Below, one piece after another: positions 5,419 to 21,820 of a stretch of DNA of 64,000 nucleotides. The first letter of the stretch is position 1; every line of letters begins with the position of its first letter. The stretch is from Scyliorhinus canicula. Lineage: Eukaryota. Where the stretch lies: assembly GCF_902713615.1 (NCBI RefSeq), contig NC_052168.1, forward strand, positions 11,532,001 to 11,596,000, in the 5' to 3' direction. The notes beneath the pieces were generated by a model. It did no database searches. It was not told the origin of the DNA and was given only the letters and a program-made list of their open reading frames with translations. The position numbers and the translations under genes are program-made.

Positions 5419-5528
5419 TTTATGACTGAGGATTATTCTTTTGAGCTGACAGCCACCCAAACACAAACCTCTATCCCAAATTCAGAAACACTAACTGTAG
5501 CTAAATCCTTCCGGCCAAAGAACTTGGA

Positions 5529-5680
5529 TTTATACTCCAGGGCTTCAAGGTAATGTCATTTAGCAGGAAATGACATCATCAATGATGGCCAAACACTCTT
5601 GTTGACCAATCAATCAGCTGCCTTGTCCAATTGGATTCCAATCAGCACAGGAGACGATGTGGGACCCAGGAACCAATCAG
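5529..5680 (-). promoter_or_regulatory. Ferritin copy 1 proximal promoter: TATA box, ETS/CRE-like site, multiple CCAAT boxes
   Basis: TATAAA (minus) at 5534-5529; CAGGAAATGACATCA at 5564-5578; CCAAT at 5606, 5627, 5638, 5673; conserved in the other two copies. Confidence 0.75.
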
Positions 5681-6224
5681 AATGTTCAAAGAGAAGCTCA
5701 TGTGAATGGAAACTCAACCATGATAGAAATACTGATTGATCTTTGACCTGAATCTCCATCCAACAATGCCAACACTCAAAAAGCTCATTTTGATCTTTGA
5801 GTGGAGATATTAAGACAACCTTGTTCACAGAATTACTTTAGCTTGTTATTCTGAGGGAATTTTCCCTCCATAATTTCTGAAGGACAAGGACAATCCCATT
5901 AGAAATTATTTTCAGAAAATATTTTTCTATTAGTGTACAAAGTAAAGTGCTGTGCGGCAGCCGGCCTTGGGATCTGATGGTAGATTGACGGATGATGATG
6001 CTGTGGACCAATTCAGGTCACAGGAAGCCCAGTTTGAAAACTCCGGCTACATGGTAGGCCTCAGGCCTCTGTGTCTAATTTCCACTTACTGGATGCATAT
6101 TGTGTGGCTGCCATTGTGATATCTCCAGTTGGTGATTAATTGTTACAACAACAACCATCCGTGCTCAAGAACGTTTCAGTCGAGGTATTTTCCGGAATAG
6201 TTTACATAAAATGGACAGCAATGA

Positions 6225-6530
6225 ATCATAGAATTTACAGTGCAGAAGGAGGCCATTCGGCCCATCGAGTCTGCACCGGCTCTTGGAAAGAGCACCCTAC
6301 CCAAGCCCACACCTCCACCTCCACCCTATCCCCATAACCCAGTAACCCCACCCAACACTAAGTCAATAATTTTGGACACGAAGGGCAATTTATCATGGCC
6401 AATCCACCTAACCTGCACATCTTTGGACTGTGGAAGGAAACCAGAGCACCCGGAGAAAACCCACACACACACACGGGGAGAACGTGCAGACTCCGCACAG
6501 ACGGTGACCCAAGCCGGGAATCGAACCTGG
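6225..6530 (-). mobile_element. HE1/V-SINE-type SINE (5' truncated)
   Basis: V-core and tail; absent from the paralogous upstream region of copy 2. Confidence 0.9.
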
Positions 6531-18358: not shown

Positions 18359-21300
18359 CTGGAAGAGAAAGAAATAGAGAGAGTCAAAAATAGGAAGATC
18401 AGTTCCTCCGCAAGCAAGTTTGGAGGGAAATATTTGCCACAACTAAAATATCTTTGCTGAAACTGGTCTGTTTGGGTGAGGAAAAGGCATGATCGACTGC
18501 AATTTACCACGAAAGCACTTTGATTTAGGACGTGCAGGTGATCATATGCACAGCAAGATCCCACAGTGGGGCTGAGAATTGGAGAGATGAAGACCCTTGC
18601 ATTGAACTGCCAGCTTAGCTCTCCAATCCTGACCACTGACTAGAGAGCGTACTGCCAATAAGGCCATGAATAAACCAAGTTGAAAATGAAAGTTGTTAAA
18701 TGAAACTTTTTTTTTTTAAATCCAGCTTTAGCCAATTGTGGTTTGGAATGTTGCTCATTTCACATTCAGGCCCACAGCTGCACTGGAAGTGGGAATTCAA
18801 GAAAATGCTGTGCTGGGTCTCCAACTGGTCACATCATTTCATTGCCCAATGCAGCAAAGTTTAACAGTGTTCAGAATTTGAAGTGAAGCTTACATGAGGG
18901 TCAGTCTGGGTGGTGGCGAGTTGGTGAAGATCCAGCAAACTCTGGTTCACATTCTTCTCCAGATCCAGGGCAACCTGCATTGCCTGGAGACTGTTGCCCC
19001 ACTCATCCCTCTCTGGTTTCTACAATGGAGAAAGACAGGTCAGTTATGTCAGGGTGCTTGCATCATTGTACCCTCAGTCAGAGTTCCGGATCAGGTCAAC
19101 ACCTTCCCCGTTTGGTACAATGGAGACAGGACAAAAAGTAAAATTTCCTCGTGTATCAGAATACACAGTGCTCAGCCACCACACAGCAAGATTGAGACAT
19201 TAACAGTTAGCCATATATAGAGAGCTGGACAGGTAAAACTTTTCAAAATAAACTTCCCCCGCCCCTTTATTGTTGATCATCCTGTCAGTCTACTCAATTG
19301 AAGCCACCATTTCCCCTCAAATCCAACCTTCACATCCAGTAGGAGGATGCGGCCTCCACGTTGATTCTGGAATTTCATCAGCTTGTCCGCATGTTCCTGC
19401 TTCTCCCGCGACTGATGTTTGAAGAACTGGGAGAAGTTGTTGAGGGCCACATCGTCCCGGTCAAAGAAAGACGTCTGGAAGGGAACAACCCAAATTCCAT
19501 TAACCACACCACAGAGCCCAATTCTAGCCCTCAAAAATTAGAAACCCTCTTCCAGCTTTCTAACCAAACTGACTATTCAACATGAAGTTACTTTAAATGG
19601 TCTGTATCCCAAAATCTTCAGGTCCAATTGTTAAGATATCTGGGAAGAAACATTTGCAGGAGGTGCAACTTGTGATAAGGAACATTAAATACTTCAATCT
19701 TCATCCTATGGAGTTTTTAAAATGTTAAATTTGAGCATTTACCCCAAAAATGTTGACAGTACCTGGAATGTAACTGACAACTAGGAGGATTGGAAAAAGA
19801 AAATTGGAAACAGAATGAATTGCCAATGTTATAGATACCAGAATTTTCAAACGTCATTTCAAAGGCTCACTAATCATTGGGCAGCATGGTGGCATAATAC
19901 TTTCATAGAATTTACAGTGCAGAAGGAGGCCATTCAGCCCATCAAGTCTGCACCGGCTCTTGGAAAGAGCACCTTACCCAAAGTCAACACCTCCACCCTA
20001 TCCCCATAACCCAGTGACCCCACCCAACACTAAGGGCAATTTTGGACACTAAGGGCAATTTATCATGGCCAATCCACCTAACCTGCACATCTTTGGACTG
20101 TGGGAGGAAACCAGAGCAAACCCTCGCACACACAGGGAAGGGGAATTTATCATGGCCAATCCACCTAACCTGCACATCTTTGGACTGTGGGAGGAAACCA
20201 GAGCAAACCCTCGCACACACAGAGAGGATGTGCAGACTCCGCACAGACAGTGACCCAAGCCAGGAATCGAACCTGCAATTTACAAAAAGTAGTTAGCACT
20301 ACTGCCTCATAGCACCAGGGACCAATTCTGGCCTTGGGTCACTGAGGAGTTCACATATTCTTCCTATGACTGCATGGATTTCCTCCCACAGTCCAAAGAT
20401 GTGCAGGGGAGATGGATTGGCTGTGCTAAATTGCCCCTCAAAAGTGTCCAAAAAGGTTAGATGGAGTTACTGGGATAGGCATGGTGCTCTTTCAGAGGGT
20501 CAGAGATAGGCCAAATGGCCTTCTGCACTGCAGTGATTCTATAAAATGTAATCAGATATGCCAGAAGGTGGGAAGGACTCCATCAGTATTACAGTTAGAT
20601 TAGTTATATAAGGAAACATTCTACTAATTTTACAGGATTGGTAACCCAAGAGATTGCATGGTCAAATCTCAAACAGTCCATTTTAGATCAAAAGTAATTT
20701 GGGAGTACAGAGCTGGAATCATAAATAAGCTCACTAATGAAAACTGCATTCTTTATCTAGTCCACATGATTCTGGGCAGCATGATAGCACAGTGGTTAGC
20801 ACAGTTGCTTCACAGCTCCTGGGTCACTGTGCAGATCTGCATATTTTCCCCCATGTCTGCATGGGTTTCCTCCAGCTGCTCCAGTTTCCTCCCACAGTCC
20901 AAAGATGTGCACATTAAGTGGATTGCCTTCCCACCAGTCCAAAGATGTGCTTGTTTGGCCACACTAAATTGCTCTTAAAGTGTCCAAAAGAGGGGTAAGG
21001 TGGGGTTACAGGAGTAAGGTGGAGGCTTGGGCTTAAGTAGGGTGCTCTTTCTAAGAGCCAGTGCAGGACTCGATGGGCTGAATGGCCTCTTTCTGCACTG
21101 CAAATTCTATGATTCTCAAACCTTTTTTAAAAATAAATTTAGAGTACACAATTATTTTTTTCCAATTAAGGGGCAATTTAGAGTGGCCAATCTACCTACC
21201 CTGCACATCTTTGGGTTGTGGGGTTGAAACCCACGAAGACACGGGGAGAATGTGCAAACTCCACACGGACAGTGACCCAGGGCCAGGATTCAAACCCGGG

Positions 21301-21589
21301 TCCTCAGCACCATAGGCAGCAATGCTAACCACTGTGCCACCGTACTGCCCGGATTCTCAAACCTAATGCAACTGACTCAACCCCCTTCCAAAATAACTAG
21401 GAAAACCATCTCAGTCGTAGCAACTAAGGACAAGGGCAGTAAATACCAGTCTGAACCCAAGACCAAATTCAGAAAGTCAAGACTCACCACAGAAAGATAA
21501 AGATAGGAAGCAGTGAGCTCCAGGTTAATCTGCTTGTTGACAGCTGCTTCACAATCCTGGTGATAGTTTTGACAAACCTGGGAGTCCAT
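18203..21589 (-). CDS. Ferritin subunit gene copy 3 (176 aa); exons 21589-21488, 19474-19328, 19019-18894, 18358-18203
   Basis: [90 protein letters not shown]...TQTDPH/LCDFLE...LSLEDCS*. Intact splice sites; AATAAA at 18102-18097. Confidence 0.96.
18894..19019 (-). CDS. Ferritin copy 3 exon 3
   Basis: 126 nt, AG/GT flanks. Confidence 0.95.
19328..19474 (-). CDS. Ferritin copy 3 exon 2
   Basis: 147 nt, AG/GT flanks. Confidence 0.95.
19879..21350. mobile_element. Cluster of four HE1-type SINEs in ferritin 3 intron 1 (one nested, one with an internal duplication)
   Basis: V-cores on both strands; the copy at ~21124-21351 has the TSD GATTCTCAAACCT. Confidence 0.85.
21488..21589 (-). CDS. Ferritin copy 3 exon 1 (coding part)
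   Basis: ATG at 21589; donor GTGAGT. Confidence 0.95.
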
Positions 21590-21688
21590 TTTGAAAATAT
21601 CTTTTTTTTTTTTTAAAAGGTCTAACTTGTTCAAACCCAATCACAAACTTACGATTGCCACCAAACATCCATCACCAAAGGACTTGAA

Positions 21689-21820
21689 TTTATACTCTGG
21701 GATCCATCTCTCATTTCTGAAGCAGGAAATGACATTTCAACCATCCTTGTTGACCAATCAAAGCAGCTGCCATTTCCAATTGGACAGGATAGGATTAGGG
21801 ACCTAGGAGCCAATCAGAAT
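21689..21820 (-). promoter_or_regulatory. Ferritin copy 3 proximal promoter
   Basis: TATAAA at 21694-21689; CAGGAAATGACAT at ~21723; CCAAT at ~21754, 21776, 21810. Confidence 0.7.

Follow-up and report, generated by a model that had tools for sequence, protein, structure and literature searches.

Loss of the iron-responsive element from three intron-containing ferritin genes of the catshark Scyliorhinus canicula

INTRODUCTION

Translational control of ferritin mRNA by the iron-responsive element (IRE) and the iron regulatory proteins (IRPs) is a textbook switch, and it is held to be near-universal for the intron-containing cytosolic ferritins of vertebrates. Does this switch act on three ferritin genes, here called A, B, and C, that lie on the minus strand of a 64-kb stretch of the catshark Scyliorhinus canicula genome (contig NC_052168.1, positions 11,532,001 to 11,596,000; referred to throughout as the window)? 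Each of the three genes has four exons separated by phase 0 introns. The familiar IRE-less ferritins of mammals, FTMT and FTHL17, are intronless retrogenes whose expression is tissue restricted, largely to the germ line or to tissues with high metabolism.

A first-pass annotation made from the sequence alone had proposed that all three catshark genes lack an IRE in their 5′ untranslated regions (UTRs) and are thus uncoupled from IRP control; together with a lysine at position 62 of the encoded proteins, this was taken to suggest a transcriptionally driven, tissue-specific ferritin system. Here, we report that genes A, B, and C indeed carry no IRE. They very probably belong, as functional members, to a shark-specific ferritin clade that is old, amplified in tandem, and marked by Lys62, in which an ancestral cap-proximal IRE was inactivated and then decayed in place, leaving ferritin output to transcription and gene dosage.

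RESULTS

Genes A, B, and C carry no IRE

The first-pass annotation had measured only ~100 to 110 bp between a TATAAA box and the ATG of each gene and had seen neither CAGTG on the sense strand nor a C-bulge hairpin in this interval. The spacing was reproduced, with coordinates right to within 1 nt (Table 1), and pattern scans found CAGTG on the sense strand in none of the three leaders. Scans of wider scope were also negative: no CAGNGN loop with at least four of five upper-stem pairs was present from −1500 to +30 of each gene, and no strict C-bulge IRE was present on either strand of the whole window.

Covariance models were applied to the same DNA, the Rfam IRE model having been suggested by the first-pass annotation. 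At the Rfam gathering threshold, the entire window yielded no match, and neither IRE_I (RF00037; gathering score, 34) nor IRE_II (RF02253) was matched at an E value of ≤10 between positions 1500 and 24000. Scans of 261 nt centered on each leader, run with the laxest filters, likewise returned no IRE at an E value of ≤10 and no match to any Rfam cis-regulatory family. A custom model derived from chondrichthyan IREs and run with all filters off gave best scores of 12.1 bits over positions 3200 to 64000 and 8.4 bits over positions 1 to 3100; no top match fell in a leader, and an intact hairpin core was present in none of the four top alignments printed for the larger region.

The same searches readily recovered true IREs. 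Canonical chondrichthyan ferritin leaders scored 42 to 42.6 bits with Rfam IRE_I, and true skate and shark IREs scored 73 to 75 bits with the custom model. These controls comprised a genomic locus (L002) and a transcript contig (L003) of the skate Leucoraja, a transcript-like contig from ENA (L001), and transcript-like contigs of the bamboo shark Chiloscyllium plagiosum (L005 to L007), and their IREs were located ~90 to 130 nt 5′ of the ATG. Because the same tools detect the IREs of cartilaginous fish, the absence of an IRE from genes A, B, and C is not an artifact of low sensitivity. Folding analyses pointed in the same direction, since the catshark leaders behaved like shuffled sequence (z = −0.16, −0.35, and −0.64), in contrast to the canonical IRE region, which folds at −18.1 kcal/mol (z = −4.5).

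The leaders had also been described as GU-rich and divergent. The first term fits gene A (60% G+T) and gene B (71%) but not gene C, whose leader is instead A/U-rich. The second applies to all three: the A and B leaders are 75% identical to each other and 53 to 57% identical to that of C, relative to 93 to 95% identity in exon 1, and, the 3′ UTR aside, no transcribed part of these genes is less conserved than the leader. No upstream ATG occurs in the leaders of A and B, and gene C has two ATGs at about its predicted transcription start. The leader of gene C also carries a copy-specific A13 tract (positions 21617 to 21605, 17 to 29 nt before the ATG), and in a second whale-shark gene (L011), the equivalent place holds an expanded (AAAAT)n/AT-rich tract; the 3′ part of the leader thus seems prone to A-rich slippage.

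A relic of the IRE persists in a sevengill shark leader

In the sevengill shark Heptranchias, the leader of one gene (L009:10003) of the same clade as genes A, B, and C (see below) contains a segment (9933 to 9967) that reads GTATTGTTGCTGTTTAAATAGTGTTTGAACTGA, the canonical counterpart being GTATTCTTGC---TTCAACAGTGTTTGAACGGA. Of the aligned bases, 28/30 match the canonical IRE, and there is in addition a 3-nt insertion. The score of this relic (38) was reached by 0/5,000 dinucleotide shuffles, which gave a null of 17.5 ± 3.3. Its loop reads UAGUG instead of CAGUG, the 3-nt insertion falls between bulge and upper stem, and the lower stem is disrupted; the segment scored 10.8 bits with the custom model, and its fold was random-like (z = −0.3).

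The position of this segment is as telling as its sequence. In the Lys62 clade, the core lies 44 to 54 nt after the TATA box, versus 49 nt in the canonical gene, and because the sevengill relic lies about as far from the TATA box as the canonical IRE does, the present leader appears to be the old IRE-bearing leader. These alignments indicate that the IRE decayed in place long ago and was not relocated to another exon. Among the nine Lys62-clade genes with readable 5′ ends (three from the catshark, two from the whale shark, and four from the sevengill shark), none carried an IRE.

Between TATA box and ATG, the catshark leaders are collinear with that of the sevengill shark (P = 0.005 for ScA-Hp2 and P = 0.017 for ScB-Hp2, both nominal values among 21 comparisons), and candidate traces of the IRE loop could be placed in all three on this basis (Table 1). 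The sevengill relic is solid, and the catshark trace is suggestive. The replacement of CAG by TAG that they have in common hints at a single ancestral inactivating change. An earlier trace candidate in gene A, ACAGTTAGTGTTTCTGAA, came from a pairwise alignment (P ~ 0.05); the multispecies alignment favors positions 5473 to 5464 instead, although both candidates are weak.

A distinct promoter is conserved in three shark orders

We compared the region 5′ of the TATA box in catshark genes A, B, and C, two whale-shark genes (L008 and L011), and four sevengill genes (L009 and L010). Measured from the TATA box, these promoters share ATTGG boxes (the inverted CCAAT, or Y-box) near −150, −115, and −83, a CAGCTG motif near −93, and TGATGTCA near −51, the last followed by (G)AGTATAAAT, and this spacing within 150 bp 5′ of the TATA box is kept over three shark orders. 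None of these elements (the ATTGG array, CAGCTG, or TGATGTCA) was found in the canonical skate gene. In the window, the three 200-bp intervals most densely populated by ATTGG/CCAAT are exactly the three promoters, with that of gene B being the densest.

Repeated Y-boxes of the CTGATTGG type bind NF-Y, and they are also classic targets of germ cell Y-box proteins in the oocyte-specific promoters of Xenopus. A promoter this rich in Y-boxes would fit the ovary expression given for shark ferritin clusters in the ferritin passages of a preprint on the Greenland shark (10.1101/2024.09.09.611499). The view that these genes form a transcriptionally driven, tissue-specific system is therefore plausible, on the basis of the distinct conserved promoter and of what that preprint says of shark clusters.

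Transcription of the catshark genes most likely starts ~25 to 30 nt 3′ of TATAAAT, as judged from the TATA box and from homology; the canonical skate transcript contig begins ~20 nt after its own TATA-like box.

The genes are intact and under purifying selection

Genes A, B, and C each encode a protein of 176 amino acids, with 94 to 96% pairwise amino acid identity. Protein A matches S. canicula XP_038639498.1 exactly (annotated as "ferritin, middle subunit-like"), and the NCBI annotation agrees exactly with genes A and B, both in gene span and in the spacing to the next ferritin gene. PF00210 is recorded for XP_038639498.1 and all of its close relatives, and the ferritin fold spans the whole protein. 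Relative to canonical vertebrate H and M chains, the A-type protein is ~72 to 74% identical. Open reading frames, splice sites, TATA boxes, and polyadenylation signals (52 to 106 nt past the stop codon) are intact in all three genes, and the ratio of nonsynonymous to synonymous substitution rates (dN/dS) ranges from 0.11 to 0.18 among the copies (0.13 for B versus A; 0.11 to 0.18 for C). The coding sequences of A, B, and C are thus under purifying selection.

A local tblastn search across the window found no further ferritin exon and no fourth gene. Small sequencing runs that were guessed to be RNA hold ~0.2 of the sampled words of gene A, about its exonic share, which is weak as evidence of expression.

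Genes A, B, and C belong to an amplified, shark-specific Lys62 clade

In a maximum-likelihood tree of 47 ferritins, A, B, and C fell within a monophyletic clade (support, 100/99) that contained only sharks in the sample examined. Its branching follows the species tree, with the sevengill Heptranchias basal, then Heterodontus, and then the other galeomorphs. Lysine occupies position 62 in every member checked; for A, B, and C, this bears out the lysine at this ferroxidase position that the first-pass annotation had read from the sequence. The complete ferroxidase center (E27, Y34, E61, E62, H65, E107, and Q141) is accordingly absent, although the catshark proteins retain all of the remaining six ligands. 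In the two sevengill proteins checked, H65R or H65C is present as well, and the protein with H65C additionally carries E61A.

The clade has been amplified in tandem in distantly related sharks. Its clusters at 90% identity hold 43, 76, 45, and 19 members from at least 10 shark species, with three copies in the window. Its sister, albeit with weak support (92/38), is another amplified clade whose ferroxidase site is intact; members of this second clade are labeled "heavy chain A/B-like" or "oocyte isoform-like" and form clusters of 54 to 180 members. In the tree, both amplified clades are separate from the two canonical, IRE-bearing types of chondrichthyan ferritin.

Not all copies in other sharks are intact. 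Exon 1 of the sevengill copy at L010:1869 is degenerate, and exon 1 in L004 of the bamboo shark Chiloscyllium punctatum has no ATG; of the two L004 copies, one has a short interspersed nuclear element (SINE) inserted in its degenerate exon 1, and the other is lost in a run of N's. In a Lys62 copy of L004, a near-perfect palindromic hairpin (5063 to 5157) lies in the intron separating exons 3 and 4; it matches several microRNA models on both strands, below their gathering thresholds, and probably represents an inverted repeat or the end of a transposon.

The Lys62 arrays of the sevengill shark and of Mustelus are flanked by a gene for a Frag1-domain protein (PF10277; 227 amino acids), and an Arf/Ras-like GTPase gene lies at the other end of the sevengill array (sevengill regions concerned, L009:14544-21756 and L010:20146-22931). 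This arrangement suggests that the array boundaries may be conserved across sharks.

Positions of the features and other elements of the window

The positions of the genes, promoters, leaders, and candidate IRE traces are given in Table 1.

TABLE 1 Ferritin gene features in the window and the IRE cores compared with them
Feature	Position	Strand	Description
Gene A coding span	2106..5418	−	ATG at 5418; exons 5418-5317, 3534-3388, 2758-2633, 2261-2106; reconstructed from splicing and translation
Gene A polyadenylation signal	2048..2053	−	52 nt past the stop codon
Gene A leader (TATAAAT to ATG)	5419..5527	−	109 nt; predicted 5′ UTR of ~80 nt; no IRE, upstream ATG, or stable structure
Gene A faint trace of IRE loop and 3′ upper stem	5464..5473	−	TAGAGGTTTG versus canonical CAGTGTTTG, at +54; collinear multispecies alignment
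Gene A TATAAAT box	5528..5534	−	Invariant in catshark, whale shark, and sevengill shark
Gene A proximal promoter	5535..5680	−	ATTGG at 5677-5673, 5642-5638, 5631-5627, and 5610-5606; CAGCTG at 5620-5615; TGATGTCA at 5578-5571
Gene B coding span	10689..13268	−	ATG at 13268; exons 13268-13167, 12381-12235, 11977-11852, 10844-10689; reconstructed from splicing and translation
Gene B leader	13269..13367	−	99 nt after TATAAAT; no IRE
Gene B candidate IRE-loop trace	13323-13313	−	TAGGGTGTTTG at +44
Gene B TATAAAT box and promoter	13368..13520	−	TATAAAT at 13374-13368; five ATTGG boxes; CAGCTG at 13459-13454; TGATGTCA at 13417-13410
Gene C coding span	18203..21589	−	ATG at 21589; exons 21589-21488, 19474-19328, 19019-18894, 18358-18203; reconstructed from splicing and translation
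Gene C leader	21590..21687	−	98 nt after TATAAAT; no IRE; A13 tract near the ATG
Gene C possible trace	21640-21632	−	TTGGGTTTG(AAC)
Gene C TATAAAT box and promoter	21688..21890	−	TATAAAT at 21694-21688; ATTGG boxes; CAGCTG at 21769-21764; TGATGTCA reduced to AATGTCA at 21736-21730
Canonical skate IRE core			CAGTGTTTG at +49 from the TATA element
Sevengill relic cores			TAGTGTTTG at +52; TAGAGTGTTTG at +52

Shark SINE/tRNA-derived repeats occur at 6230 to 6540 and in the introns of genes A and C (~4070 to 3894, 3248 to 3060, and 20338 to 20052), and weak tRNA-like Rfam matches at 16501 to 16586 and 22583 to 22664 probably represent the same kind of element. No Pfam domain was found in the open reading frames between 22 and 64 kb. 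Two runs of N's (56523 to 56749 and 57073 to 57409), either masked sequence or gaps, lie just ahead of a ~5.5-kb minisatellite (57935 to 63700) composed of ~240 copies of a 23-bp unit with ~80% identity between units, which produces many spurious long open reading frames on both strands. A "YLFDK" string at 63731 is a chance match within this minisatellite.

At the canonical locus of Leucoraja (L002:11842-14664) and in C. plagiosum, the IRE-bearing ferritin has a tail-to-tail neighbor that encodes a longer ferritin (216 to 224 amino acids), which may be a presequence-bearing form. Finally, a 176-amino-acid vertebrate-type protein labeled "ferritin [Aeromonas veronii]" (P0021) is near-identical to the canonical ferritin of sharks and rays and is very likely host contamination of a bacterial assembly.

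DISCUSSION

The first-pass annotation had itself named what would overturn its conclusion, namely, an IRE in an exon further upstream. An unannotated noncoding exon or an alternative start could in principle supply the element and keep the genes under IRP control, and acceptor-like CAG strings do occur 7 to 8 nt before the ATG in genes A and B. Such strings are, however, missing from gene C and from the whale-shark and sevengill genes. Moreover, the IRE-free 64 kb takes in both of the ~5-kb spacers between the genes as well as 42 kb of sequence 5′ of gene C. Because no IRE exists in this stretch on either strand, the promoter and its TATA box are conserved right next to the leader at the coding exon in three shark orders, and the relic of the ancestral IRE lies within that same leader, we regard an upstream IRE exon as very improbable. 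An element of another kind deserves somewhat more attention. A conserved GTTTTAG-TGTGGTTG stretch or a G/U-rich tract might maintain translational control by iron or stress, either by offering IRPs a weak site or by recruiting some other RNA-binding protein. A short stretch of leader is indeed common to catshark gene B and the whale shark (ScB-Rt, P = 0.022, nominal among the 21 comparisons), and the A and B leaders are rich in G and U. Yet shuffled sequence folds as well as these leaders, which match no Rfam cis-regulatory family and are less conserved than any other transcribed part except the 3′ UTR, and the leaders of gene C and the second whale-shark gene are A-rich and quite unlike the others. 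A noncanonical element of this kind is therefore unlikely.

The missing IRE could also reflect neutral erosion in copies that are silent or decaying. The broken sevengill and bamboo shark copies described above show that members of this clade can degenerate, and among the recorded sequencing runs, no RNA run was shown to hold A, B, and C. Against this stand the intact open reading frames, splice sites, TATA boxes, and polyadenylation signals of the three catshark genes, their low dN/dS, and the conservation of their promoter between orders. The content of gene A words in the runs guessed to be RNA also speaks against silence, albeit weakly, as does the ovary expression of shark clusters in the ferritin passages of the preprint (10.1101/2024.09.09.611499). 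Disuse is thus a highly unlikely cause of the loss. The proposal that these are intron-containing ferritins without an IRE, and hence outside IRP control, survived all of the sequence tests that were run and is supported at that level.

In-place decay of the IRE in functional genes accordingly remains the explanation that we favor, and several points weigh against it. The transcription start is predicted from the TATA box and from homology. The catshark traces are weak relative to the canonical IRE (P ~ 0.05 for A, with no significance for B or C), and reading them as IRE traces depends on the sevengill leader as a bridge. Among the transcript contigs, none encodes the exact gene A protein. 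The ovary expression comes from other species, and the ferritin passages of the preprint do not split the Lys62 clade from the other amplified clade. Lastly, the lack of a canonical IRE, taken alone, may leave room for other iron-responsive mechanisms.

If the genes do function as in-place decay of the IRE implies, the compact promoter, with its several ATTGG boxes, CAGCTG, and TGATGTCA, would drive transcription from the TATAAAT box and yield a short, unstructured leader of ~75 to 80 nt that offers no site for an IRP1 or IRP2 clamp. Output would then be set by the promoter and by copy number rather than by an iron-dependent translational switch, probably in the ovary or oocyte. Because the Lys62 change accompanies a parallel amplification of an H-type clade, the L-like Lys62 chains could co-assemble with H-type chains into heteropolymers made in bulk, plausibly for iron provisioning of the egg.

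We also entertain a broader proposal, to which we give somewhat less than an even chance. Sharks would have a dedicated ferritin system of two subunits, wholly outside IRP control and probably at work in the oocyte, that pairs the amplified H-type chains with Lys62 chains whose L-like character arose independently of tetrapod L. A single event, the loop C-to-U change shared by sevengill and catshark copies, would have inactivated the IRE before the modern shark orders split, and decay of the element and a new, Y-box-rich germ line promoter would have followed.

How do genes A, B, and C compare with known ferritins? Like the canonical FTH1-type H/M genes of vertebrates, those of the catshark and skate included, they have four phase 0 exons, PF00210, a TATA-type promoter, and a homologous leader, with ~72% amino acid identity between the proteins. 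The canonical genes differ in having an Rfam IRE_I of 42 bits ~90 to 130 nt before the ATG and in encoding Glu rather than Lys at position 62; conversely, the ATTGG/CAGCTG/TGATGTCA promoter sets A, B, and C apart from the canonical skate gene, as does the massive tandem amplification of their clade.

FTMT and FTHL17 resemble A, B, and C in being IRE-less ferritin paralogs, and tissue restriction is known for the mammalian genes. The route to IRE loss differs, however: retroposition cost FTMT and FTHL17 their 5′ UTR context, whereas the shark genes keep three introns and the ancestral leader and would have lost the IRE by point decay. A retrogene origin of A, B, and C is ruled out by these three introns, which lie at canonical ferritin positions, and their proteins have no mitochondrial presequence.

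In mammalian L chains, Lys62 replaces a ferroxidase glutamate, and the mRNAs of tetrapod L chains keep their IRE. By analogy with tetrapod L-ferritin, with which they share Lys62, the catshark proteins are probably partner subunits for an H-type chain. L has nevertheless lost several ligands (E27, E62, and H65), in contrast to the catshark proteins, in which only position 62 has changed. Orthology to tetrapod FTL was considered and ruled out, since the Lys62 clade groups, if weakly (92/38), with the other amplified shark clade and not with frog L.

A further parallel comes from snails. The yolk ferritin of Lymnaea and Biomphalaria has a 5′ UTR without an IRE, while the soma ferritin of the same animal has one (PMC10799875). 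Yolk ferritin thus resembles A, B, and C in its IRE-less 5′ UTR, and in snails it is a reproduction-linked paralog. It differs in being secreted, with a signal peptide and a 42-amino-acid insertion, neither of which is found in the 176-amino-acid shark proteins, and the origins are independent.

Shark ferritin arrays have already been published. The passages on ferritin in the Greenland shark preprint report 155 "FTL" and 179 "FTH1" copies in three clusters, labeled by best hit, and state that these clusters have been conserved with the white shark for at least 250 million years and are expressed specifically in the ovary (10.1101/2024.09.09.611499). These clusters are almost certainly the same gene families as the amplified shark clades described here. 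The two mentions of ferritin in that preprint contain nothing on an IRE, the promoter, or Lys62 (10.1101/2024.09.09.611499), and literature searches on shark ferritin together with the IRE found nothing on point; the promoter of the Lys62 clade and the in-place relic are the new details.

For annotators, these results carry a caution, in that the labels "ferritin middle subunit-like" and "ferritin heavy subunit-like" in sharks mask at least two noncanonical families. More broadly, an ancient, intron-containing, amplified clade of vertebrate ferritins has dropped the IRE, and the decay appears traceable stepwise across species. The clade would thus provide a dated case in which a cis-regulatory RNA was lost by point decay and not by retroposition, a natural experiment in ferritin freed from iron sensing, and a testable link to the massive provisioning of large, yolky shark eggs with iron.

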